DNA from: Pavona decussata
Taxonomy: Eukaryota
Length of the DNA stretch: 64,000 nt
Direction: 5' to 3'
Assembly (NCBI GenBank): GCA_977016875.1
Contig: CDRNST010000167.1
Location: forward strand, 62,001-126,000
A program made the position numbers and the translations under genes. The notes below the pieces were generated by a model. That model saw only the letters and a list, made by a program, of their open reading frames with translations, did no database searches and was not told the origin of the DNA. Positions 1 through 64,000 of the stretch are shown in pieces. The stretch's first letter is position 1. The number at the start of each line of letters is the position of its first letter.

Positions 1-128
1 GAGTTCACAAAATCACAAAGATTGTTGGAAATTAGCCAAAAGTCTAGACGACATAGTACTGTTGGGGATTTTTGACTTCAAGTGTAACTCCTCTTTTGAG
101 GATTGTTGATTCTCCCAAATATCAACTA
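1..128 (-). pseudogene. L1/Tx1 LINE ORF2 endonuclease (APE) fragment, C-terminal part
   Basis: Minus-strand translation (one frameshift, one stop) VDIW/RINNPQKRSYT*SQKSPTVLCRLDFWLISNNL matches the L1 APE motifs DIWR..NP and RLD.WLIS. It continues the fragment at 2391-2645 across the pogo insertion. Confidence 0.8.
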
Positions 129-585
129 CAGTAAACACCTGCATATAAGAACAAATGGATTATAAAAACATCAGGCTGAAATTTGGTCAATAAAGCCTCA
201 TTTTTATAAGCACAAGATCAGCCTGAAAAATTCAGCATGTTCTTATAAAATGGAAAAGGTGTCATTATTACATAAAAAACAAGTGATTTTGTGTTGGCAG
301 TCATGACTCTATCAGCTGTCAAGTGGTCGTATTTGTGTATTGAGTACTGTACTGATGTTTCTACTTTAATTGATTTTTCTACTGTAAATACACAAAAAAA
401 ATTGAGTACAGTATAGAAGTTCATTACTGCATCAAGTTTTGTACAATTTGGATCTGTATACTTAATGTTTCAGTGTCCTGCAGTTTCCTCAGGGTTACAA
501 CAATCAATAAAGAAAATCCAGGAGGAGAAATCATAAACAAAAGTTAATGTCATACCAAATCCTACAAGTACCATACTGAGGGAGT

Positions 586-999
586 TTATTCTTGACACTT
601 CTGTACGTTGCTCAGTTTACAGTTGAAATTCGACTCGGTTTTTTTCTTCTGTAATTCTCTAAGAAGATTCTTGAGATATCTAGCATTGCCAATTAGTCGA
701 TAGTCCACAGGAAGTTCTAGACCATCTCCTTGCCTTTTGTTGAATCCACTTCCAATACACTCTGCTTCAATTGTTCCATCCTCTGATAGAAACTTGTTGA
801 AGATTTTAGAAAGTTCTGCAGAGACATGACCAACAATCTTGTCATCCTCATTTTTGACTGCAACTGCAAATCGACTGTGTGGATTATCTGGTTCCATTTC
901 ACAGAAAAGGATCTCCCCAATGTAAACCGTATATTCCTTGAAATAAGCATGATAACCCCTTGTACTTGCTTCTAAAAACAGTTCATATTCGTTCGCCAT
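586..999 (-). CDS. Stand-alone HIRAN-domain protein (137 aa) carried inside the pogo element
   Basis: Intact ATG-to-stop ORF with HIRAN motifs RGYHAY, EPDNPHSRFAVAV, IVGHVS and GLELPVDY. Confidence 0.8.
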   Translation of the reverse strand: MANEYELFLEASTRGYHAYFKEYTVYIGEILFCEMEPDNPHSRFAVAVKNEDDKIVGHVSAELSKIFNKFLSEDGTIEAECIGSGFNKRQGDGLELPVDYRLIGNARYLKNLLRELQKKKTESNFNCKLSNVQKCQE

Positions 1000-1049
1000 A
1001 ATAATGCAACAAAAACACTTTATAAAAGTTCACTTTTGACTCTCGCAAG

Positions 1050-1790
1050 CAAAGCAAAGTGCAAAGTGAGAAAGCTATGGTTCAGAAAAAAGAATAAAGG
1101 TCAAAATAGTGTTATGGAAAAGATACTGCTGACAGCTTCAAAGGGAGCGATAACTGGTTCCAGCGGTTTAGAAAGCGGCATGGTATAATACTCGGAAGAA
1201 GAACTAATAATAAGAAAAGCAGTGCTGACGATGGCAGACTTACAATTCAGAAGTTCCACAAGAATTTGAGGAAAGCCCTCAAAACATAGAGGAGGAGAAA
1301 TAAATCAACCTGTATTGACCCAAAATATGGAAGATGGACCCTTGAAAAAAAGTATAATGTGGACCAGGTCCCTCTTCCATTTGTAGTTGACCAAGCGTCA
1401 ACTTATGACACCATCGGCACTAAGCAAGTATGGATTTCACAACCCTCATTGGGCTTGGACAAAAGGCAAGCCACCTTGCAACTTTGTATAAGGGCTGAAG
1501 GAGACCAGAACGTAAAGCCAGCTCTTGTGTTTAGAGGGAAAGGAAATGTAACCTTACTGGAGAAACAAAGCTATGATGAGAGGATGGATGTATATTTCCA
1601 ACAGAATGCATGGATGGATACAGAACTTAACATGCAATGGTGTAACACTACACTTTTTCCTGGAGTTGGAAAAAATGACCAGGAAAATGTCATTTTTGCA
1701 GACAATGTGGGTTTTCAGCAAACTAGAGAGTTCCACGAGGCATGCAGGAACGAAATCAATGCAACTGTATATTTACTACCAGACTTCTGG
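1050..1790 (+). pseudogene. pogo transposase remnant (CENP-B-type HTH plus DDE_1 domain)
   Basis: FKGSDNWFQRFRKRHGI (HTH), NVDQVPLPF, GLDKRQATLQL, KPALVFRGKG, YFQQNAWMD and IFADN. Contains stops and frameshifts; both N- and C-termini are missing. Confidence 0.85.
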
Positions 1791-2390
1791 GAAAAATTCA
1801 CCACCTGGTGGTATCACAAAACGAAACAATTTATTTCCTTAACAGAACGCGTCGTCCTATATGGTTGGCACAACAACGTCGAGAATAAAAGACACTTAAT
1901 GTCACTTTACTTATCGCAAAACATCATATCTTCTCAACAAGTTAACTTTTGAGAGCTTTCTGATCCGCTTTAGACACAAATTAGATATTTTAAAAGAAAG
2001 TTACTTAGCAAATAATCAATTTCATAATTTTCTTTCTGTATGGGACAAGTTATTGTAGTTATTATACATAATTTTGTAATACCACTATAAGCATATTGTT
2101 AACATAATAATTTACTTTTGTAAATAATACTTCCAGTTTAGTCTGTTTTTTTCCTACTATGTACTTTTCTTTTCGTATTTGCATTGTACCTAGCTTCTTG
2201 TTGTGTTTTGTCAATAAAGATGAATTATTAAAAAAAATTACATCTAGGGGCATTTTTGGGTAGTACCCGTATTACTAATATAGAAATTTAAGAGCATTTG
2301 AAGAACACTTTGAGGCTGATTTGTCACTAAGCACCCGTTAGATAAGAACCCGATCAGCCTGACCTCCGAAATCATGTGTTCTTATATGCG

Positions 2391-2645
2391 TTCGGTTTGT
2401 AAACTTTCAATGCTGTCAATTGCTGCTCTTCTTGGAATCATGATACCACCACGTTTATCGAGAGCTGGATTTAAAGGACAGTTGAAATCACCCTCTAAGA
2501 TGATATTTTCCTCTGAGTCTAGGTTTTTACTTTGAAACAAGACATGCAACTTACTAAAGAACTGAATTAGATCTTTATGTTTGTTTGGGGCATAAATATT
2601 TACAAGAACAAATACTTTCTTGTTGAGTTGGAGTTTTAAAATAAT
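2391..2645 (-). pseudogene. L1/Tx1 LINE ORF2 endonuclease (APE) fragment, N-terminal part
   Basis: LVNIYAPN and IILEGDFNCPLNPALDKRGG are canonical L1-clade APE motifs. Confidence 0.9.
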
Positions 2646-3545
2646 ACCCAAGTTAACATGACGGACCGAGACAACAGCACTAGCTTAATTAACTGCAGGT
2701 TCAGGAGGTAGTCTTCTTTTACGTGCAGTTTGCAACTGCATTTGTCTCTTGGTGGCCTCCTCAATTTCCAGCTTTTGTTTTTCTTTAGCTCGGTCAGCCG
2801 GCAGGGACTCTTTATACTCTCTGTCCTGTTGGCCTTTTATGGTCTCATGTTCAGCAGAAGTGCCTATTAGTCCACCATGGTTGGCATCAACATGACTTTC
2901 TTTCTTGGCAGGAAGTTTGGTTGGCTTCCTATCCCCTTCCAAAACCTCTGGCAACTCTGCGTCACACCCTCCTAACACCCTTCACTTTCCTTTTCAACAG
3001 ATCTTGTCATCAGATAAAGTCTTACTGTGGTCAGGGCATGGCTAGTTATGTATCTGGCCAAAGTGAAGTTTCCAAAGGATATCTGATCACCCCTGAAGTT
3101 TCCAAGTGTTGATGTCATATCTTCAATTCTACTAAAAAAGCTCGCACCACCAGGAAAGAAAATTGATTTACCCAGAGCAATCAAATCATGCACATCCGAG
3201 CTACGTTTTGCACTCACAGTTCTAGTCCCACCTCCTTTTGCAAGGCGAACTCCAATGTACCTTTTCTGTTGCCGGTCATAGTGCAGCCAGCCAAACTTAA
3301 CTTTTTGTGGCCAACTTTAATTTGGTGAGAGGGCCCTGGTTCTGTACAGTTTGCCTTTTCTTCGACTTTCATTTTCTTTGGTATTACCTTTTTTAAAGGA
3401 GATCGAGTAACTTTCTTTTCTTTTCATTTCTATTCTCACCTTGAACTTTTCATTTACATGGCTTCACAGATCCCCTCTTCGCAGTGGTCCTAGCTCTGTC
3501 AATTGTTCATCTGAAGCACCAATTACTGCCGAATAATCCATCTAA
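2646..3545 (-). pseudogene. Decayed multidomain gene: SAM-like start, GWLHYD..GGGTR domain, coiled coil and UBX-like start; probably a transposon accessory gene
   Basis: Successive frames read MDYSAVIGASDEQLTELGPLRRGDL; GWLHYDRQQKRYIGVRLAKGGGTRTV...LIALGKSIFFPGG; QLQTARKRRLPPEP..ASAVVSVRH. An AG acceptor lies at about 3542. The gene is truncated by the L1 fragment. Domain names are by-eye inference. Confidence 0.45.
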
Positions 3546-3789
3546 ATAATGTGAAATAGAACTGTATTAAAATAATAAACATCAATACAGCAAGAACTGA
3601 AAAAGGAATATAATTTCCCTCTGACTGGTTGATTCATTTCAACCAGAGTTTCAACCATATTACTTCCATTTTACATATTTTGAAATATTTTTACATAAAA
3701 ATCGTGTAATGCAATTTCAAGTCCACAAATTTGCATCTGACTAGATTGGAAAGATTTCTGATGTGCCTATTTATTGATTGATTGTTTCA

Positions 3790-3880
3790 CGGTCAGTACA
3801 AAATGCAGACAACAGACTGCAGACCGGGTACAAAATACAGACTGCACGCTGCAGACTAGGTACAAAACGCAGACTGAGAA
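3790..3880. repeat. Subterminal-type short repeat cluster (GTACAAAAYRCAGAC x3, TGCAGAC)
   Basis: Directly visible imperfect tandem motif, typical of a DNA transposon end. No partner end was found. Confidence 0.5.
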
Positions 3881-4612
3881 AATTAAGACCGTGTTTTCAT
3901 CAAATACGTGATAACATGTTATTTTATAACTTACCAAGTGTTGTCTGCGGTCATCTTCCAAATTGGGGATTATTCTTGGCCTTATTTTTTCTTTAACAGA
4001 ATTTTTAGAAAGCCTTCATTGTCTTCACACTTTGCGTGTGAGAGTTTAGTATCAAGTAACAGCACATCTATAAAATATGAATCTGGACATTATCTAAAAG
4101 CAAGTGAATAAGAATCTTGTAGGAAATAACATTTAAAGAATGTCCAAGTGTCCTTCATGTGCAATGTGTCTGAGCTGTAAATACAAGTAAAGAGCAATCG
4201 GCGAATTCTTACAGGAAAAAGAAAAGCATCATTTTCGTGACTGGTCGTTTGTTTACTTTTGTTGTCGCTGCTTGGTAACTAGTAGACTGCAAGTGGTCGT
4301 CCTTTGTTCCTCAGAGCCAAGCAGGGTGTGCGAAAAGTTAAAATTATGCAAATTACTGACAAGAAGGGAGGAGAGATTGGACTGAGAGAGAAAAAAAGGA
4401 AGACTGCGGAGGTTTTATTGTCTCTTGAATTACCCGTTTCAGCGAAATGGAAATTCCGATTGGTCGGTTACTTGTCAATCTGTCAACAATTCTGTCAACA
4501 ACAAAAGTCTCAGTCTGTGGGGAGTCTACTTTTCGCGCTAGCCTTGAGATAAGAGGGGGACAGAAAAGATGTTTTGAAACGTGTTTGCGAGGAAAAGTTA
4601 GCCAGAATAATT

Positions 4613-4737
4613 CTTAAATCTCAACAAGAGGAAGCCGTTTTATCACTTTTAAGTTGAAAGGACGTATTTGCTGTATTGCCAACCGGATTCGGTAAAAGTC
4701 TTATCTACGGAAGCTTTGTTTTTGTGAGAGAAGTACT
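4613..4737 (+). pseudogene. RecQ-type SF2 helicase N-terminal fragment, likely from an AcademH transposon
   Basis: Not in the ORF track. Translates LKSQQEEAVLSLLS*KDVFAVLPTGFGKSLIYGSF (Q motif plus Walker A). Confidence 0.75.
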
Positions 4738-7184
4738 CGATGGGCATTTGCCTTCGATCATCGAAAGACGCAGATCTATTAGACTCTCATAAACGTGATA
4801 AACGAACATCCTGCAATCTCTCTGCAGATAAACATGAAATCACAAGTTACAAAATCCACAGATCCCATGTCTTCATAGATAGCAATCTTGCAGTTAATCC
4901 GAGCCAGTAAACCTTAACAAATGCCACAGAGCTAGCATACCCAATGGCATATGAAAAATTTTTCCCAATGGCTAATCATTAAAAAAACATCCATTGAGTA
5001 TTATTTGAGTTTTTCCCTTCATGATCAAGATAAACATCATTAAGCAGAGCTAAGGTACCGTTGCATGCTTTATTACAAACTTATTTGCAAACTGCAGGAG
5101 TGGCGTTGGCCCATCAACACTTTTTAACTCATTTTAGGATCGGTGGACAGTTTTTGAATTATGAGTTTCTCGATCTGCCATGTTTTGGTTATCTGCAGCG
5201 TCAAATGTCAGCCTTGCTCTTGATAAGGAGAACAAACACGGGTAGAATACTCCTCTCTGGATTCCTTAGGGAAGCCAATGTCTTCAAGGAAGCCTGCTAA
5301 AGGTTTGGTCAGTCCCTTCTTCTGAAGAACCTGGAATATATTCTCCCTTTAGGCACCCTCGAAATTACCAAACATGACTTCGAAAGGTCAGTGACAAATT
5401 CTACAATACTGGGATGCTTTTTCACCCTTTCGCTTCCTTCCTCGCTTATTTTGAGCGACCTTCTTTTTCAGTGTTTCCAGATTCATTAGGAAACCATCGT
5501 TCTTATTCAAAAAGAGAAATCCTCACCAAACAGAACAGTAGGGGACAAACAGACACGTTTGTTTACAGAAAGACACGAGAAATCACCGCGAAAAGGTATC
5601 ACTTGTCAAAGTAGGAGGGGATGTTAATTAAAAGGTGCGAAAAGCGGCAAATCGCCAGATCAAATATCCCATTGCAGTCTCTTATTTTTTTCTCCGCTCG
5701 GGCCCCGCCCTCGTTCCTCACGGCTTCGCCGTTTGCTCCTCGTGCGTTATGGTATGCTACCATGATGCAAAAGAAAAATAAGAGGGTGCGCACAGTCTAC
5801 GTAACTAGTTAACTACCCAATCATCAATCAGTGTGTGTTCACCCTTGAACATTGAAGATATATCACAATGAAGGATCAGTTTGGCTTCTTCCTGACTTTC
5901 TTGACCCCTGAAGGGCCTGCTTACAGGCTGTAAGTCTGTTCTTGGCTACCAAATGAACACTGATTGATCATTGACCATCATTGTTTCTTGAACATTGCGT
6001 GTTATTAAAAACTGGATCATTGTATAATGCAATTCCAGGGATTTGATTGGCTTAGTGGCCATGGTATATTAGCCATTATACCATGCCCAAAAATAGCGAC
6101 CATTAAATTGGCTTTTGGCTGTTTTTGTTTTGTTTTGGCTGCTTTTGGCTTTTGGCTGACAAAGCGAAATCAGGAAGATCTAGCAATATTTTTTGTTTGT
6201 TTTTAATAAAACAATTATTCCACTCGCTCTTCTCGGGTATGAGATGATTACAGTATTGTGCAAAAGTAATGCAAGCGAAATTCGACGAATTTCGTTTTTT
6301 GTTCTCCCGAACTTTCGAGCGAAATTTCGTCCAATTTCAAGCGAAAAGTTTCACCTGGAACGATATTTCGAGCAACATTTCGTGGAAATATCGCACAATT
6401 TTTCGGAAGGTCAAACGAAAAAGCGCTATTGCAAAAATTCGCACAACAACTACAGTAAATAAGAACCCTAGTGATAGCGAGGTAGTATTCACATCGCTTC
6501 CGATCACACAGGTGAAAGGTTAGTCTGAATGCCTGAACGAAGCTTATCGTAATTTGACTTGTACACGTTTACTAACAAATGAATGACAAACTAAATAAAA
6601 CAACTTGCTTGAAGTCAAACAGACATGTAAGCCCGACACATTTGCCATGGAAAGAGCGTACATAGAGTATATATACTGTAAGCTTGTGTGAAAATCACGC
6701 AAAATGTAAACAAAACACTTCAGTCGGTCGTGGCATAAAGTTGCAATCTTCCTTGCGTGTTGCCACTGTAATACTTGTGCCAACAATATGAAAATGTAAC
6801 CTCTGATTGAGATAAGTCCATGTTCAGTTTTTAAAAGTATTAGAAATATAATGATTAGGATAAAGCGGAATGTGCTGCAAAGTGGAACAAAACGAATTGC
6901 TATTTGTGGTTGTTTCACCAACGAATGACAATTCGATTCAGTGGACGGAAAGTGGTGCCTAAATTTCAAATATAAATTCCATGACCACACTCTTTTCTAC
7001 TTGTGTACAGTGTGTAATGCTAATGAAATGAAAGGAGTTCCCTGAGAAGGTTGCAATGGCTGAGATTGTTAACGTCAATTGTCCAAAATTTTCGGAAATA
7101 ACTTATTTGCATCAAGCTATTTTAAAAGCGTCACGTTTGGTCTCATGGGTTTATATTACTTGCACGCTAAACCTCGACTGATGT

Positions 7185-8430
7185 AACGTGAGTGATCATC
7201 GCGGTTATGAACACTACTTAACCCTTTGACTCCTGTCGAGTTGCCATGGTTTTCGCATACATTACCTTTTTTCTAGAGCGGCTTTACGCGATAAACTGCG
7301 CACTAGATAAATAAATATTCTTGGCTTCCAAAATTAACTGCATATTAAACTGGAATGATTAAACAAATGTTTTCCGACGTAAAATAATATGGTTACCGAT
7401 TAATCATTTCCCGAAAAACACACTTGAACGCAAAAATTGCGAAAATTCACGGCATGTTGATGAAAACCTTTGGCATATCAAATTTCAACCCGCTTATGCA
7501 AATTGCCCTTGATTACGCATCTGTTTCTTCTCAAACGAATATATGAATTGACAAAGACTCAAAAATCAACAAAAAGCTTTTCCAACAAAACTTTTTATTG
7601 AAATAAACGATATATTTGCTATTAGAGGCAAAAAACTTTCAGTTTTTTTACGTGCGTGCAAACACGCATGTAAAATTTGAAGACGCTCCGTGTTTGTACA
7701 AAGCGATCACTCGCAGTAAATTCGGGCACGTTTGCGATGAAAATTACAGCAGTTATAGAATTCTGGTTCAAATCATCACTTAAACTATTTGTAAAAAGCA
7801 AATCCACATCGGAAAACATCATTTACCGTGTTGTCACCATTGTCCTGGTCTTAAAAACTCCGTTTGAAGCCCGCGGTTCGGTTTTAACTTTTGAGGCATA
7901 TTTCGGTAGCGGCGTGGAAATATAAGAGATCACAACGCGAAACGGCTTTTCGCCGTTTTTTAACGCCTCCAAGTTCTCTTTTTTGACGGTAGATTATTGT
8001 TCACGGTTATTCCTTTCCATTGTGAGCTTAAAAAAGATGTACTTGCTTTAAAAGATGAAAAAAACATGTCTTGAAACTTCAGGACCGATTCACGCGCGGC
8101 ACCATTTTATAATTTTGCTCAGCTCCATGCGGTAGGTTAAGAAGGATCCTTTCCCCTACCCCCTAAAATGCCTTAAAATATGCGCAAAAGACAGATTCTG
8201 ATTGGTTTATCATTCTACTAGCTATTGTGACCTTTTCAGGACGAAAAAAACTCCAGGAGGGGAGGGAGAACGTATCGAGTTTCACGCGCGGAGCATGCGC
8301 GAGGGACGGCCGGTTTTGGCCGGTGTAGGAGTCAATGGGTTAAGCAGTAGTGAAAATAAAGAGTGAAAAAAAAAAGAACAATTCAGGCTTGACGGGATTG
8401 GAGCCCACTACCTCTGTGATTTTGGTGCAA
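7185..8430 (-). mobile_element. tRNA-derived SINE fragment split by a piggyBac insertion
   Basis: GATCATCGCGGTTATGAACACTAC-TTAA-GCAGTAGTGAAAATAA...CAGGCTTGACGGGATTGGAGCCC joins across the insertion. The right part is the reverse complement of a degenerate tRNA T-arm/B-box. Confidence 0.55.
7222..8339. mobile_element. Non-autonomous piggyBac element (1118 bp)
   Basis: TTAA|CCCTTTGACTCCT ... AGGAGTCAATGGG|TTAA: a 13-bp TIR with one mismatch and a TTAA TSD at 7218-7221 and 8340-8343. No transposase inside. Confidence 0.9.
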
Positions 8431-8751
8431 TGAAAACGAAGCCGTCCAAATGTAAGCAATGCCAAGGTAAGTGACACCACAAATTTATGCTCGCTGGCAC
8501 GTGCCAAATAAACAATCACTATAAACCCAAATGCTTCAAAAGAAATAATGAACGAACTTTGCGACTCTATCCTCGAAACTCAAAATAACAAATCGAATAA
8601 CAACCGAAATTATTGTGCGTTTTTAATCAAGGAAATACTGTTTTTCGAAGTTTTGATTCAAAAGATTACAATCAAGCTTAATTTCTCAGCTTGTAAAACA
8701 GCGGCTGAAAAAGCTACATTTTTTAGTTTCTCGTCCTTCACTGTTCAAACT

Positions 8752-8830
8752 GGGTGTCTCAAAAACGAAGACCTCTAAAACGAAGACCCTAAGAACCTAA
8801 GACCCTACAAACTCGAAAACGAAGACCCCC
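8752..8830. repeat. AAAACGAAGACC subterminal-type repeat cluster
   Basis: AAAACGAAGACC x3 plus CTAAGA(A/C)C x2 following GGGTGTCTC. Probably an orphan DNA transposon end. Confidence 0.5.
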
Positions 8831-9033
8831 AAAATTCCCAAGTGTAAGTACAAAAAACTAACATAACATAAAAAAGACATTATTTCTTACCTCAAGTGAA
8901 ATTTAATTCGTTCCCGTCTGGTCCTATGAGATTTTCCGCCATCTTGAGCTGAGTAACCACGCTCCCAAGGAGCTCTGACTGGAAGTGCATTGCAGACTGT
9001 TGCTATCGCAATCTTGTCATCAGTTTTGTCGCC

Positions 9034-9550
9034 GGGCCGTTTACCATTTGACAACAAAAATCGGAATTTTCGGTTGGAAGTTCAAATGGTTCAGGCCATT
9101 CCACTGGAATGTTTCCGGAAAATATGGAAATGCTCAGATGTATTCCTCTTTCCCCATTCCAACCGCAATAACCGGAAAATTCTGTACCATTTCTCAAAAT
9201 CATGATCGGCCCAGTCCATTTTCGCACGCTCTTCAGTCGTAATTCAAGATGTCAACTACGGCATGGCGATGCACTCTTTGTGAAGCAATATTTTTCACAA
9301 CTACTGAGTATCTGAATCAAAACTGCAGAGGCAAGTAAGTAATCAATTTTTATTATTCTTAATTTTTAGGGGCCAAACTCTTGGAGGTGTAGAATTGTAC
9401 CAGAATAGTCAGCACTCAACAACTGTGCCGCTTTTTTGTTTCATTATTTTTTGTGAGCCGTAGGGCACTTGGGCCAGCCAAACCGCTGAAACTGGAAAAA
9501 CCGTACCATATGAAGCGTTCTATTCCAACCGGATTTTATGTGCAAATGGT
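9034..9550. mobile_element. Harbinger/PIF-like non-autonomous element, right end truncated
   Basis: Starts GGGCCGTTTACCATTTG. The inverted remnant CAAATGGT is at about 9543-9550, and there are TTCC/GGAA-rich subterminal repeats. Confidence 0.5.
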
Positions 9551-10802
9551 TCTCAGTAACTCCCAGCTACCAACCGCTGGCCAGAGAGCCTGAGAACTCT
9601 GGATACGAGTGTTTCGATCCATCCTGCATATTCCTTTTCTTTATGCGTTTGATTTCATTTATTTATTGGGATAAATGTAACAGAACTCATAATTTCCTTC
9701 CATGCACCCTATCGCTATCTATTCTTTTAACCAAATTGAGTGGTCCTTAGCCGTTACAGAGCAAACTTTTCTGTAGAGGAATGTTTCTTTCCTATTATAA
9801 TTCCAGTTTGCGCGAATCTACGCAATATTTTATCACGCTTCACTTTTGAGAGAGACCTGATCTGCAACTCTTTCAGGCCCACAAATCACAAAGTTCTCTG
9901 GCCTGTTCGCTAGTGTTTTTTCCGCTCAGTTTTTGTTAAAAAGTAGACTGCTCATTGTAAATGTATGATAATGTTAAGCTTTGTTTTACTCTAGTATTTT
10001 TTTACTCTTAACTCGCTGCAAGCCTAAATATTTATTCACTTTCTGGTATTACATTTTTGCTTCATGGAAACTGAGTTCTTAGTTCAATTAGGGAACACAC
10101 CAACTCTGGAAACTTGTTCTTTAAAAAAGGTATTATTTCCTTTAGAAGGTGTTTTCAGCTGCGAAATTGGAAAGTGATATAGGTTATCTTTTATGACCGT
10201 TTGATTTAGGCTTGTGCTCCCTCACACCTTGGAGCCAGAGTTCGCATAATGATTAGTTTAGCAAACCTCGTTAAGATCCAACTTCGCTCGCACACTTTAA
10301 CACACTGCCAACTCAATCGTTTTCAGTTGAGTTTTTACTCTGCTTTGAGCCTTAAACTAAAATCTGTTTCGACAGGATCTTAGTAAAACTTGATTACTTT
10401 CAGGCTAGCGGTTTGCATTGCTGTACTGGAATTCAGCCTTCCAAATATCTTAGGTTTTCCAAATTTTTGCACAAACGAAGGACCCCTATCTAATTTCTTA
10501 TTCCTTTCACGATCCGACTCATTGCAGCTGCGAAGTTTTGGCATGACAATAACTTTTACCTTGAGAAAAACCAATTAACTTTAGCATTTCACATAAATAT
10601 AGCTGCTTTAATCAGAGTTACTATCTTGATCTTCTGATCCTGAGCTGTAAGAACCTCAACTATCTTCACGAAATAAAACAAGTTGGACCAAACCTTGGAC
10701 TTCTAAAATCTGTCCCATAACATCATTGGTACTAACTGAAACAAAACACGATGTTAAGTAGTTTTTTTCTGAACTCTTTCTTGCTTTCTTGGCTGGACTT
10801 TG

Positions 10803-59189: not shown

Positions 59190-62100
59190 TCAGCATTCGT
59201 CCTCGGTACTTGTTTGATCTTCGTTTGACAGCAGGAGGACAAGCTTGTTAACGGGACGGCGTAGTTCTGAAGTTTGGGTCTTCAACAGGACACTTCGCAC
59301 CAGTCCCTCTTTGTCTGGTTCCGTCTTGATAACACGGCCCATGGCCCACGCGTTTCTTGGTGAATGTTCGTCTTTGATGAGAACAACATCGCCAACGGTC
59401 AGATTTTGCACTGGTCGGTCCCATTTTCGCCGTTCTTGCAAGGTCACAATATATTCTCGTTTCCAGCGCGACCAAAACAGGTTGGCGAGATATTGGACTC
59501 TGCGCCAGCGTTTTCTCATATACACATCGTTTCGTTGGAACTTTCCAGGTGGGGGAAGTATGATGCTCGTCTTCATCGTCAGAAGTTGACTTGGTGATAA
59601 AGGGTTGAGATCATCTGGATCGCTGGAAGCAAGTGTTAAAGGTCTGGAATTTACAATGGCTTCGACCTCGCAGAGCAGTGTTCTAAACGATTCATCATCC
59701 AAACGGGTGCCATGCTCATGTAGTAGGACGGTGAGTACTTTCTTGGTGGTCCGGATCTGACGTTCCCAGACGCCGCCCATGTGGCTTGCCGATGGGGGAT
59801 TGAAGATCCAATCGGTGCCTTCTTGGCGTAACTTATTCCTGACTTGATCGTTGTCTACTTCCTCGATTGCTTCTCGTAATTCCGCGTTGGCGCCGACAAA
59901 ATTTGTTCCATTGTCACTTCGGATCTCCCGAACTGGTCCACGGCGGGCAATGAAACATCTTAGGGCTTGAATGAAAGAGTCCGTTTCGAGTGAATTTGCT
60001 GTCTCGATGTGTATCGCTCTGCTTACTAAACAGGTAAACAGACAACCATGGCGTTTCAGTTCCTTGCGTCCTTTGATCAGATATGGGCCGAAGAAGTCGA
60101 CGCCCGTGAACGTGAACGGTGGGGCTGGTGTTAGGCGATCCTTGGGCAATTCGGCCATCTTTTGCTCGGTTACGGGAGCACGGTTCCGACGACAGGTGAC
60201 ACATTTCGTAATTTGATGGCGGACAGCAGCATTGGCGCCAAGTACCCAGTACTTTTCTCTCAATTTAGCTAGCGTGTGACCACGCCCAGCATGTCTTAGG
60301 TGCTCATTGATTTGTCGAATGATGAGTGTGGTGACATGATTCTTACGAGGTAATATGACAGGGTGTTTCGCTTCCTCTGAGAGACCTGCTTGGCTAAGGC
60401 GACCGCCGACACAAAGAACGCCTTCCCTGACGAACGGATGTAAACGGTACAGGGAGCCAATCTTCTTAAACTCCACTTTCTTTTGTTTCTCCTGGCCCCG
60501 TGAATCTGGCTCGCCGTCACTATTGGCCCGGTGAAGGATGTCTAGCTCTTTGCTGAATACTTGGGACTGTACAAACTGGATGATGGCAATTTCGGCCTCG
60601 TTTAACTCTTGCACTGAGAGAGGCACGTTGCAATGATCCACGTGTTTCGTTTCGGCTTTCCGTTGCTTCACACTCTCTGGACGTTGCATTGCAACTAGGT
60701 CAGCCTGGGTAACTTCTGTCTTCTTCCGATCTTGCCTTCTTCTCAGTAACGTTGCTTTAATGCGTAGAAATACAGCCACTGACAGTTTCAGGCGATACCA
60801 GTCTGAATGGTATTCAATTAGCTTGTTTACGCTAGTGGTCAAGTCTTCGGTTACCACTGTTCCGGCAACGACCACCTTCTTAATCTCTGGATCATCCTCA
60901 GGGATGTCGCCGGTGAGAAAAGGCTGTTGTGGCCATTCCGATACTGGTTTCCATAGGAACTCTGGTCCTTTTATCCAGCGCGAATGCTGTAGGTGAGGTG
61001 TTTCTTTCATTCCTCTGGAGGCATCATCAGCAGGATTGTTAAGAGTGTCCACATATCTCCACTGATGAGGACTGGTAAAGTCTCTGATCAACTGGACACG
61101 GTTGGAGACAAAGACTTGAAATCTCTTCTGTTCGTTTCCGATGTATCGGAGCACTGTAGTCGAATCCATATGATAGAAGGTGACATCAGGCTAGGTCTCC
61201 AATTCTTCTATCAACATTTGTCCTACGCGGACAGAGACGGTAGCTGCGGTGAGCTCTAATCGGGGAACTGTTACTGTCTTGATTGGTGCGAGGCGGGCCT
61301 TGCCCATCAAGAAGGCACAATGGATACGGTTTGCATCATCTTGAAGGGGAAGGTAGCCGGAGCATCCATAGCCTACGGTACTAGCATCGGAGAACAGGTG
61401 AAGCTGCTTTGAAACAATCGGTCCAAACTCCCGTGGTTTCAGACAACGGTCAACATGAAACAATTCGAGCGTTGGGAGTTCGTTCTGCCACTTGATCCAT
61501 TGGTTCCGATGTTCTTCTGGAATATCATCGTCCCATCCAAGACTTTTGCTGCGACATAACTCTTGTAAGATCTGTTTAGCTACCAGTGTAAATGGGGCGA
61601 TAAAGCCTAGAGGATCATAGATCGATGACACGGTAGACAGAATTCCCCGTCTTGTTATCGGTTTGTTGTTAAGGATTATTCGAAATCCAAAACTGTCCGA
61701 CTGTACACACCATTGTACCCCGAGGGCACGTTTGATAGGGAGATTGTCACGATGGAGGTCCAGAGCCTTAGTTTCCTTTGACCTCTCTTCTTCTGGAATC
61801 TGCTCCAAAACACCACGGCGATTGCATGTAAACTTCGTAAGGTGGAATCCACCCTTCTGACACGCTCTGCTGAGATCCTTGATCAACTTTCCAGCAGTGT
61901 TCTCGGTGTCCACGGACCGTAAACAGTCATCGACATAGAAATTCTTTCTCAAAGTGTTAGCAACAATGGTGCCATATTCTTCCTCGTTATCACTAGCAGT
62001 CTTCTTCAATGCAAAATTGGCAATGCTCGGTGAGGATACTGCGCCGAAGAGGTGCACCACCATCCTGTATTCCTCCAATGGAGCGTCTAGGTCACCATTC

Positions 62101-64000
62101 GGCCACCATAAGAAATGGAGGAAATCGCACTGTTCAGGCGGTACTCTAACCTGATGGAACATAGCCTCCACATCTCCTAAGAAGGCAACGGGGTCTTCAC
62201 GAAACCTGATTAATACTCCTACCAAGGAATTCGTGAGGTCGGGACCTTGGAGTAACTGGTCATTAAGGGACACTCCATTGAAACTCGCACTGCAATCAAA
62301 TACTACGCGTATTCTGTCCGGTTTTTTCGGATGATAAATCCCATGGTGGGGAAGATACCATACTTTGCCGGGCCTTGCTGCGCCTGACTCGTTTGGGACC
62401 TTTTGGGCATAGCCTTTGGCGATAACATCGTTGACAAATTTAGTGTAGTCAGTATGGTACTTTGCATCTCGAAGCATCTTCTTCTTCTGCCAGTTAGCTC
62501 TTTTGATTGCTTGTTCTTTGTTGTTGGGCATGGTGATGTCCTGTGCTCGGAAGGGGAGCGGGATCTCATAATGTCCGTTAACGTTGCGGACACCTTTTTC
62601 TGCCATGTCCAAAAACTTCCTGTCTTCTTGTGAGTATCCACGCTCGTCTGGGACTTTGCTTACAGTGTGATCGTTAAAGTCCATTTCAAACATACTCAGC
62701 AACGACTTGGGCGCGATGATCTCCTTGTTAAATTCGACTTCCCGCACAGTGATGCGATTCACGGTAATCGTACTGCAACTTTGATCAGTTTCAACTTGCA
62801 AGGGGCCACTGACGGTCCAGCCGTGATGGAGGCGGAGGGCAAAAGGGCCGTCACCATGACTGGGTATCACTTCTAATGGTTCCAGGGCAACTGGACAATT
62901 GCTGCCGATCAATAAACCTATTTCAAGGTCAGGCCGATGTGCAGGGATTTTCTGAGCAACCTCTGAAAGATGTTCCCAGCGACTTAGGAGTTCAGGTGTT
63001 GGAATTTGATGATGGCCTGCTGGAATCTCATCACTCGTGAAGGTACGGGGCAACTCAATGGGATTATTGTCATCTAAGTCTGTGACAACAAGGTCAGCTA
63101 GAACGGTGGTTTCAACTCGGCTATGACCGTGCATTGTTCCAAGTTGAAGAACTGTCTCAACGCCTTCTTCACCTATCAGTCTCCTAATGTTTTCGGTTAC
63201 AAAACAGCCACTGCTACCACCGTCATAGAATGCATAGGTGGTGACTGACTCAGCGTTGCCTTTCTTCCTTATTTTGATGGGGAGAATAGCATGTAAGACA
63301 ACAGTTTCCTTGTTGATAGTCGCATTGCACACAGTCTCAGATATATCAACACATCCGTTCTCCACCACAGTGGTGGGCTTGACGTTGGAATTGTCGGTCT
63401 CACTGTTTCCATCTTTCTTATTTGGTTTGAAATCATCCATGTGGAGTGCCGTGGGGTGTCGTTTTCCACATTTCTGACAGGTTCGTTTTTTCAAACAGTT
63501 CCTTGACACGTGATTGGTACCATAACAAGCAAAACAGAGCTTCCTGTCTCCGAGGAATGACCTTTTCTCTTCTATTGTCCGCTTTCGGAAGTCATCACAG
63601 TCGTCCAAGTCATGAGGCTTGTTGCATAATAGACAGCTTCCTGTGTTAGAGTCACAACATTTAGTGTTCCTCAATGATACTGATGCAGGAGGTGTGTTAA
63701 CATTTGTTGCGAAACTGCTGCTCCTCTGATTTGGTAGTTGTGTTCTCTTGGTACTATCTCTGATACTACTAGCTTTGTGCTTCTGTTCACCCTTGTTCAG
63801 GGCTTGGCTGCCATAAATGGGATCGTTAGCTGATTCAGCGGCTGATTCAACAAATTCTGCGATGTCCTTGAAATCAGCTATCCTTCCTTTCTCCTTTAAT
63901 TTGACAACTCGGTCACGCCACCTTGACTGTAGGTGAGGCGGAAGCTTTCGGGCAATTGTCTGCATGTTAGTGGGGTGATTCAGCTCCGTCATATGAGACA
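59190..64000 (-). mobile_element. BEL/Pao LTR retrotransposon gag-pol; near intact with one in-frame stop, running off the window
   Basis: Triple Cys/His knuckles, protease (AFYDGGS), RT (YLPHH, RVVFD, FYVDD), RNase H (FSDAS, PRLEL) and integrase (GVDFFGP, SDNGTNF, GVWER). The two ORFs are in the same frame, separated by a TAG at 61191-61193. Confidence 0.97.

Follow-up and report, generated by a model that had tools for sequence, protein, structure and literature searches.

Co-oriented LTR retrotransposon remnants across a transposon-only domain of Pavona decussata, a candidate uni-strand piRNA locus

Introduction

What could place the remnants of many unrelated transposable elements (TEs) on the same strand of one locus? 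The question is raised by a 64,000-nt stretch of Pavona decussata DNA (assembly GCA_977016875.1, contig CDRNST010000167.1, abbreviated C167, positions 62,001-126,000 of the forward strand), the whole of which is called the window here. Window coordinates are C167 coordinates minus 62000, the window thus being C167:62001-126000, and coordinates without a prefix refer to it. In Drosophila, flamenco-like loci have been nominated by sequence only, as LTR-rich, non-telomeric regions with a strong one-strand bias per 100-kb window (PMC10643416), and flam-like loci were first found through this signature and afterwards confirmed by small RNA (PMC10643416; PMC11400887). Among cnidarians, 402 of 457 piRNA clusters of Nematostella are unistranded (PMC5731801).

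Results

A transposon-only domain of at least 144 kb

The window is the mid-section of a TE-only, co-oriented domain that runs from C167:1 to ~139-146 kb. Extending the view beyond the window, as the earlier note had advised in order to find a promoter, showed that the minus-strand bias is already present at the first base of the contig and decays at ~139-146 kb; the left edge lies beyond the contig and, because the domain begins at contig base 1, so would any upstream promoter. The domain measures at least 144 kb, or 126 kb of non-redundant sequence once an 18.26-kb tandem duplicate (99.84% identity) is removed. Self-comparison also revealed a 1.38-kb tandem unit and no further large duplicates in the domain.

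Consistent with the earlier impression that no host exon is evident, no host gene was recognised over at least 144 kb: all Pfam matches above the curated cut-off correspond to TE proteins or to ORFs read as TE-borne, the latter judgement covering HIRAN, zf-MYND and PML_C. The first host genes, encoding FMO, start at C167 164.6 kb on the minus strand. No TTAGGG arrays were found in a telomere check across 256 kb that includes the contig start. Poly(A) and poly(T) runs show no strand asymmetry, and AATAAA is not depleted on the plus strand relative to the minus strand (89 versus 104 occurrences). The CpG observed/expected ratio of the domain (0.61-0.82) is lower than that of the adjoining sequence (0.79-0.96), which is soft evidence compatible with a germline-methylated, possibly transcribed unit.

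Elements of the window

The features of the window are collected in Table 1.

Table 1. Features of the window, in window coordinates unless prefixed by C167.
Feature	Position	Strand	Basis or content
pogo-like element	129-2389	ambiguous	opposed ORFs: HIRAN 589-1029 (-), DDE_1 transposase remnant 1290-1949 (+)
L1-like endonuclease remnant (candidate)	2385-3316	-	endonuclease-like motif in translation only
RecQ/DEAD-like helicase fragment, motif I region	4604-4738	+	tblastn 42% identity, E 1e-6
MULE transposase, frames of 596 aa and 363 aa	10806-13685	-	ESM Atlas
Unclassified 210-aa ORF, Cys/His-rich segment	19749-20378	-	earlier name Kolobok; no Pfam match
Gypsy-type LTR remnant	21759-25257	-	integrase, RNase H, RT, protease and gag pieces; extent by tblastn
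Crypton (tyrosine recombinase) remnant	29925-31393	-	Pfam, match span 30356-31232
LTR retroelement, 5' part	36811-38532	-	capsid-like frame, then frame with gag CCHC knuckle and MYND finger
High-copy repeat, 1.45 kb	38553-40000	.	39 scored genome copies, 87-92% identity, among 2597 candidates
Nested insertion, 2.07 kb	40352-42425	-	contigs connect 40351 directly to 42426
DNA-transposon-like element, five ORFs of 140-230 aa	44030-47238	-	probably Zator-like
Unclassified 157-aa ORF	51219-51689	-	earlier name Sola-like; no Pfam match
Harbinger/PIF transposase remnant	54381-54821	+	Pfam DDE_Tnp_4, 6.3e-14
Unclassified ORFs, 157 and 114 aa	57669-58404	-	earlier name hAT; no Pfam match
BEL/Pao LTR retrotransposon	58669-64000, continuing to C167:127917	-	Pfam and LTR pair

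Three elements of the window are of LTR type. The Gypsy remnant shows Pfam matches to Integrase_H2C2, rve, RT_RNaseH and RVT_1 at 21759-24085 (-), and its relatives elsewhere in the genome, with 92-93% protein identity, have open frames of up to 1345 aa. The BEL/Pao element (Peptidase_A17, RVT_1, rve and DUF5641 at 59193-63992 within the window) retains its 3' LTR at 58669-59040, the LTR pair being 94.6% identical, and a pol region split over two frames of 666 and 1433 aa; family members elsewhere in the genome reach 94-98% protein identity and open frames of ~2100 aa. In the third, the gag-like CCHC/MYND ORF at 36811-38082 (-) is matched by zf-MYND (2e-8), and no pol was found downstream, nor any RT or integrase homology.

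The DNA transposons are more heterogeneous. Pfam confirms the strand assigned by the earlier note to Gypsy, Crypton and BEL (minus) and to pogo and Harbinger (plus), tblastn does so for the plus-strand RecQ fragment, and ESM Atlas for MULE on the minus strand. The pogo-like element carries HIRAN (2.7e-9, at 589-999) and DDE_1 (2.2e-8, at 1359-1949) matches, both parts also being present in its genome copies (76-92% identity); because its two ORFs oppose each other, the orientation of the element as a whole is ambiguous. The 596-aa MULE ORF (11898-13685, -) falls with the MULE/ZSWIM clusters of ESM Atlas (0.95), its ten best matches belonging to one clan, and the downstream frame translates to a SWIM-like Cys/His motif; neither ORF has a Pfam match, and no contigs encoding the MULE ORF are on record. 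Crypton is matched by DUF3504 (6e-10) and weakly by Phage_integrase (1.5e-3), and shares 35-53% identity with the product of C167:162824-164149, a 442-aa ORF that itself carries both domains. A relative of the Harbinger remnant, 60% identical, lies on the minus strand at C167:143418-143786. The call of a Zator-like element at 44030-47238 fits a resemblance to DDE_Tnp_ISAZ013 in ESM Atlas (0.84), a lead only, its ORFs having no Pfam match. The names Kolobok, Sola, hAT, Academ, SAM/UBX and L1 were confirmed by no tool; that of L1 reflects the endonuclease-like motif alone, in a remnant with no Pfam match at E<=0.05. Pfam searches of 20 further short ORFs (10 plus, 10 minus) gave nothing usable.

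A second RecQ-like copy lies on the same strand at C167:21462-21866 (+), with a weak DEAD match (1e-4). The two pieces were considered as exons of one host gene and rejected as such, since both represent the same motif I segment. Nesting is frequent, as in the 40352-42425 insertion and in a hAT within an LTR element.

Strand bias and its carriers

Stop-free frames of at least 150 aa in the window number 3 on the plus strand versus 17 on the minus strand (554 versus 5428 aa), independently of the 12 minus and 3 plus orientable elements of the earlier note, a split that our recount reproduced. Minus-strand ORFs exist for all 12, with homology or motif support for only 7 of them; the other 5 are unclassified. 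Over C167:1-144000, with the duplicate removed, frames of at least 150 aa divide into 8 plus and 44 minus, and those of at least 200 aa into 3 and 25. The adjoining 112 kb (C167 144-256 kb), which serves as a local rather than genome-wide comparison, is balanced (18 plus versus 11 minus, and 6:6, respectively). When the window and its flanks are cut into 5-kb bins, one duplicate copy being removed, 22 of 25 are minus-dominant (p=1.6e-4). The window was chosen for its bias; the flanks lay outside the view of the earlier note. Taken separately, the flanks are minus-dominant in 10 of 12 bins at 5 kb (p=0.039) and in all 7 bins at 8 kb (p=0.016), which amounts to moderate evidence (flank-only p range 0.016-0.06).

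The sharpest asymmetry concerns LTR elements. The domain contains 7-8 independent LTR remnants, all on the minus strand (two-sided p 0.008-0.016), including 4-5 of 4-5 in the flanks; none was found on the plus strand or within the adjoining 112 kb. Homology-supported elements over the entire domain stand at ~15 minus versus 6 plus (p ~0.08, by hand arithmetic), verified DNA transposons at only 5 versus 3, and the non-LTR elements of the flanks are near balance. Exceptions on the plus strand of the domain include an intact 807-aa hAT-like ORF and a Penelope copy. The co-orientation is thus confirmed as real and as reaching past the window, and it is the LTR elements that account for its significance. 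The earlier picture, in which an antisense library would target more than ten superfamilies and DNA transposons among them, was overstated.

One explanation of these counts is chance combined with selection of the window: TE orientations would be random, the window would have been picked from ~700 for its 12:3 split, and a few long multi-ORF LTR elements would inflate the ORF statistics. The p of ~0.035 attached to that split is indeed weak alone, as 14 of the ~700 genome windows were flagged as similarly biased, which is about the rate expected, and the homology-supported and non-LTR counts given above agree with such an origin. So does the lack of general co-orientation between genome-wide BEL and Gypsy matches and their neighbours within 150 kb (2 concordant versus 2 discordant pairs, judged by eye and too few to use). 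However, the flanks, which lie outside the selected window, repeat the bias in bins and LTR remnants alike, all LTR remnants of the domain share one strand, and the bias ends where the TE-only domain ends. Chance with selection appears rather unlikely, while keeping appreciable weight.

The co-oriented LTR remnants share 26-46% protein identity where alignable and, because of this divergence, represent different families and separate insertions. This bears on a structural or insertional cause that would involve no selection on a transcript, such as old segmental duplications, oriented nesting or an integration bias following replication direction. The 18.26-kb duplicate, the 1.38-kb tandem unit and the frequent nesting speak for such a cause, but self-comparison disclosed no other large duplicates and the unrelated LTR families must have arrived separately. 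No integration mechanism known to us would give unrelated LTR families a common orientation across 100 kb, and an origin of this kind seems improbable, the most so of the explanations weighed here.

Transcript evidence

None of the listed runs is labelled as RNA, and the data consisted of Logan contigs from four putative RNA runs (X1, X2, X9 and X10) over 41001-47000. Such contigs document presence and not absence, cannot represent reads of <31 nt and carry no strand information. No locus-specific transcript was found in the four sets over these 6 kb: the contigs over 41-47 kb are repeat-derived only and extend into other loci, while the unique parts are bare. Those over the 40352-42425 insertion derive from other copies, because they continue into unlike sequence. 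At 41296-41859 this insertion holds part of a gene, interrupted at 41491-41673 by a canonical intron of the minus strand, the CT..AC joint of which is seen in runs X1 and X2. Run X2 contigs also represent other copies of the Zator-like element at 95-97%. Of the loose ends of these contigs, only one maps inside the 256 kb, and it marks a nested insertion and not a splice. The contig data neither back expression nor prove silence.

A further explanation places the domain within a plus-strand host intron of great length or a non-piRNA lncRNA unit, where selection would remove sense LTR and LINE insertions that cause transcript termination or mis-splicing. In human introns, ERVs and solo LTRs are significantly antisense-biased (PMC1794541). 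A strong LTR bias (7-8:0) with a weak DNA-transposon bias (5:3) matches this model, the left boundary beyond the contig leaves room for upstream exons, and the low CpG ratio is compatible with gene-body methylation. Against it, none of the scanned plus-strand ORFs of the 144 kb contains a host domain, the two RecQ-like pieces are not consecutive exons, no plus-strand splice joint was seen in the contigs over the 6 kb examined (41001-47000), and the nearest host genes lie on the minus strand. Moreover, for an invertebrate genome of 600 Mb, >126 kb without an exon would be extreme. An intronic or lncRNA setting is judged quite unlikely.

Discussion

The most likely cause of the co-orientation, we infer, is transcription of the domain, at present or until recently, as a single long plus-strand unit, and the kind of unit that fits best is a uni-strand piRNA precursor. 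By the orientation of its TEs, the domain is a candidate uni-strand piRNA cluster, a reading that we favour tentatively and hold at somewhat below even chances. The fuller proposal, in which a cnidarian would possess a trap of the flamenco type, at least 144 kb long, with one plus-strand piRNA precursor keeping LTR insertions in antisense only, is more doubtful. The precursor antisense to the TEs would here be the plus strand; insertions antisense to it would be retained as a source of antisense guides, and sense insertions would tend to be lost, above all LTR elements, which carry their own termination signals. Transcription of the locus, its direction and the production of piRNAs are matters that we only infer.

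Several features recall flamenco. The domain is a large region rich in TE fragments and devoid of recognised host genes; its TEs, LTR elements especially, are strongly biased to one strand, a bias that would be antisense to the presumed transcription; and its BEL and Gypsy copies belong to families with long-open-frame copies elsewhere at 92-98% protein identity. The TE density of coral proTRAC clusters, which was reported as below expectation (PMC13343488), counts against reading the domain as a piRNA cluster. If that reading were confirmed, the antisense TE-trap design, so far detailed in Drosophila, would exist outside bilaterians, orientation-selected TE traps would be an old and general design, and a sequence-only route would be available to nominate clusters in non-model genomes. 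If the locus is instead silent, TE runs on one strand can exceed 100 kb with no piRNAs involved, and caution would be called for with cluster predictors that use strand bias.

Comparison with known systems

The domain resembles the antisense bias of intronic ERVs and LTRs in the shared orientation of its LTR elements, with hardly any bias among DNA transposons, and selection would likewise act to keep a long transcript intact; it differs in that its 144 kb yielded neither exons nor host domains and in a size far above that of ordinary introns (PMC1794541).

By lineage, the likeliest match is with the clusters of Nematostella, where the one-strand type is dominant, together with the proTRAC clusters of reef corals (PMC5731801; PMC13343488). 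Those clusters were defined by small-RNA mapping, the present locus by TE orientation, and the parts of the two reports consulted describe no TE orientation bias (PMC5731801; PMC13343488). The comparison is also one of scale. The present locus is larger than would be expected of proTRAC clusters.

With respect to Drosophila flamenco, the domain differs in being known from TE orientation, flamenco from piRNA and precursor data, and in having its promoter out of view; the host, a cnidarian, is not known to have a follicle-cell/ERV system, and the domain also contains BEL/Pao and many remnants of DNA transposons. The likeness to flamenco and flam-like clusters (PMC10643416; FlaHMM, PMC11400887) nevertheless covers the main traits: a TE graveyard of >100 kb without host genes, a contig start free of telomeric repeats, LTR/Gypsy-type remnants of several families all on one strand, with the bias carried by LTR elements rather than by other classes, and the representation of families that have intact-looking copies elsewhere.

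Extent of the strand bias

The minus-strand excess that the earlier note had counted in the window (12:3) is borne out by a tally of seven supported and five unclassified minus-strand elements versus three on the plus strand, and stop-free frames of at least 150 aa, a measure independent of element names, number 3 plus versus 17 minus. The p value of 0.035 attached to the original count is by itself not convincing; windows flagged for such bias, among the roughly 700 in the genome, occur at about the chance rate. Sequence was also examined beyond the window, which contains no N, over positions 1-62000 and 126001-256000 of its contig (C167; 1.12 Mb, in a genome of 602 Mb). Extended in this way past both ends of the window, as had been proposed, the minus excess runs from contig base 1 to about 139-146 kb and is then gone. 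With an 18.26-kb tandem duplicate counted once, this co-oriented domain holds 8 plus versus 44 minus frames of at least 150 aa and 3 versus 25 of at least 200 aa; the corresponding values for the neighbouring 112 kb are 18 versus 11 and 6 versus 6.

In bin tests, from which opposite-strand shadow ORFs were also dropped, 22 of 25 5-kb bins of the domain are minus-dominant (p=1.6e-4, window included). In the flanks alone, which played no part in the original count, 10 of 12 bins are likewise minus-dominant at 5 kb (p=0.039) and all 7 are at 8 kb (p=0.016), a moderately strong out-of-sample replication of the direction. Chance combined with the selection of this window is a rather unlikely source of the bias, given that flanks unseen at the time repeat its direction. 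The strand observation holds up and extends further than first described.

Elements carrying the bias

An all-against-all ORF comparison, together with tblastn using a library of the region's own verified proteins, identifies 7-8 independent LTR retrotransposon remnants in the domain, every one on the minus strand; this census shows none on the plus strand and none in the neighbouring 112 kb. The remnants share only 26-46% protein identity where alignable and thus represent different families. Verified DNA transposons comprise five on the minus strand (Mutator at C167 24.6 kb, MULE, Crypton, Zator-like and Harbinger at 143.4 kb) versus three on the plus strand (pogo, Harbinger and an 807-aa hAT-like ORF at 130.0-132.5 kb). 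These counts do not support the further proposal of an antisense library directed at DNA transposons; the strand signal comes from LTR elements. The BEL and Gypsy families represented here have further copies elsewhere, 92-98% identical, in which long open frames persist.

The 807-aa ORF (C167:130041-132461, plus strand) is uninterrupted, has no Pfam match and is taken as hAT-like on the strength of a C-terminal motif. It is inserted in opposite orientation in a minus-strand LTR retroelement, with integrase at 128.3-129.5 kb and RT, protease and gag occupying 132.5-135.4 kb. A Penelope-like family forms a head-to-head pair at C167:58999-61398 (RT plus GIY-YIG on the plus strand), whose arms match at 97.7% DNA identity across 523 bp.

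Among the names first given to elements of the window, MULE, Gypsy, Crypton, BEL, pogo, Harbinger and RecQ hold, whereas Kolobok, Sola, hAT, Academ, SAM/UBX and L1 found no confirmation in Pfam scans of window ORFs; the minus-strand ORFs behind the latter do exist. One MULE-like Atlas cluster is commonest in Cnidaria. The ISAzo13/Rhodopirellula DDE family is the bacterial relative of Zator. In a pogo-like element (window 129-2389), an uninterrupted HIRAN ORF and the transposase remnant lie on opposite strands; since the two co-occur at several other genome loci (76-82% identity), HIRAN is part of this element family. In an LTR-retroelement 5' remnant (window 36811-38097, minus strand), a MYND zinc finger lies in frame with a gag-type CCHC knuckle, and no pol was found downstream.

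Elements of the co-oriented domain (C167 coordinate = window coordinate + 62000)
Feature	Position	Strand	Basis
LTR remnant	C167 about 1.2-3.9 kb	-	census
LTR remnant	C167 4.0-9.5 kb	-	census
LTR remnant	C167 20.2-21.3 kb (may form a single element with 32.3-35.8 kb)	-	census
LTR remnant	C167 83.8-87.3 kb	-	census
LTR remnant	C167 98.8-100.5 kb	-	census
LTR remnant	C167 120.7-127.9 kb	-	census
LTR remnant	C167 128.3-135.4 kb	-	census
HIRAN ORF	window 589-999	-	Pfam
pogo DDE_1 remnant	window 1359-1949	+	Pfam
RecQ-like fragment	window 4604-4738	+	sequence similarity
MULE, 596-aa ORF	window 11898-13685	-	protein-language-model neighbours (ESM Atlas), very high score
Gypsy-type pol (in the LTR remnant at 83.8-87.3 kb)	window 21759-24085	-	Pfam
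Crypton	window 30356-31232	-	Pfam
gag-like CCHC/MYND ORF (in the LTR remnant at 98.8-100.5 kb)	window 36811-38082	-	Pfam
ORF set resembling ISAzo13/Rhodopirellula DDE family	window 44-47 kb	-	Atlas, high score, lead only
Harbinger DDE_Tnp_4 remnant	window 54381-54821	+	Pfam
BEL/Pao element (in the LTR remnant at 120.7-127.9 kb)	window 59193-63992	-	Pfam

Contigs of putative RNA runs

Fifteen putative RNA runs hold 5-18% of the words of window 38001-48000, and four probable DNA runs about 75%. Contigs of four putative RNA runs, from four studies, were aligned to window 41001-47000. In all four, coverage takes in 41.0-41.86 kb plus 35 bp at 42426-42460; 43.1-47 kb is covered by one run (X2) only, in pieces of 95-97% identity. 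Per run, 71-100% of the pieces extend into sequence unlike the locus, which indicates that they stem from other copies. No continuous locus-specific transcript is found in the four contig sets over this interval, and these contigs are unstranded and cannot show absence; assembled contigs exclude piRNAs, which are too short to enter them.

A loose contig end joins window 40322-40351, marking 40352-42425 as a nested 2.07-kb insertion. The gene fragment within it (41296-41859) matches contigs of the four runs at about 99%, and a CT..AC joint at 41491-41673 in these contigs shows that its family is spliced on the minus strand. Spliced and retained forms of this canonical 183-nt intron are both present, and the transcripts lead into sequence absent from the 256 kb examined.

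Genomic setting

No host protein domains were found in the co-oriented domain. The nearest host genes are FMO-like (flavin monooxygenase; minus strand, C167 164.6-167.9 kb), with a second copy, 97-99.6% identical, at 189.0-191.5 kb; both lie in a segmental duplicate (C167:164601-175362 and 188972-201128) whose exon-sized ORFs share 97-99.6% protein identity between copies. Just outside the domain, the last of four neighbouring minus-strand ORFs (C167:149537-151043) reads, in translation, as having a HECT-like C-terminal motif and could be a host or TE-borne ubiquitin ligase fragment. Long plus-strand open frames at C167:178332-181957 come from a tandem array of short units (about 3.6 kb, copies 70-87% alike) and are not coding evidence.

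The contig start shows no telomeric repeats. Near it lies the 18.26-kb tandem duplication (C167:21688-39947 = 39948-58207, 99.84% identity), which holds a 1.38-kb tandem unit (28216-30969, 97.5% identity) and is a very recent event or else an artefact of assembly. Structural or insertional causes of the shared orientation appear improbable. CpG observed/expected is 0.61-0.82 inside the domain versus 0.79-0.96 outside (C167:1-256000), a difference compatible with a transcribed unit methylated in the germline and also with old TEs.

Comparison with known transcription units

One long plus-strand transcript might cross the gene-free domain, and selection for its integrity or output would leave LTR elements of unrelated families sharing one orientation across more than 100 kb. 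On its sequence, the domain is a reasonable candidate for a uni-strand piRNA cluster, a reading that is quite possible while short of probable. Some other long transcription unit is a decidedly less likely source, even though selection within introns yields the same LTR-specific antisense bias (PMC1794541). Counting against a piRNA cluster, a coral study reports TE density below expectation in proTRAC clusters (PMC13343488). In its favour, Nematostella has 457 clusters of which 402 are unistranded (PMC5731801).

The best-documented case of LTR runs in one orientation is indeed the uni-strand piRNA cluster: Drosophila flam-like loci, in which Gypsy elements carry the strand bias, were first found by their one-strand TE signature and later confirmed by small RNA (PMC10643416; PMC11400887). 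The candidate cluster described here resembles them in that LTR elements carry the strand bias in both.
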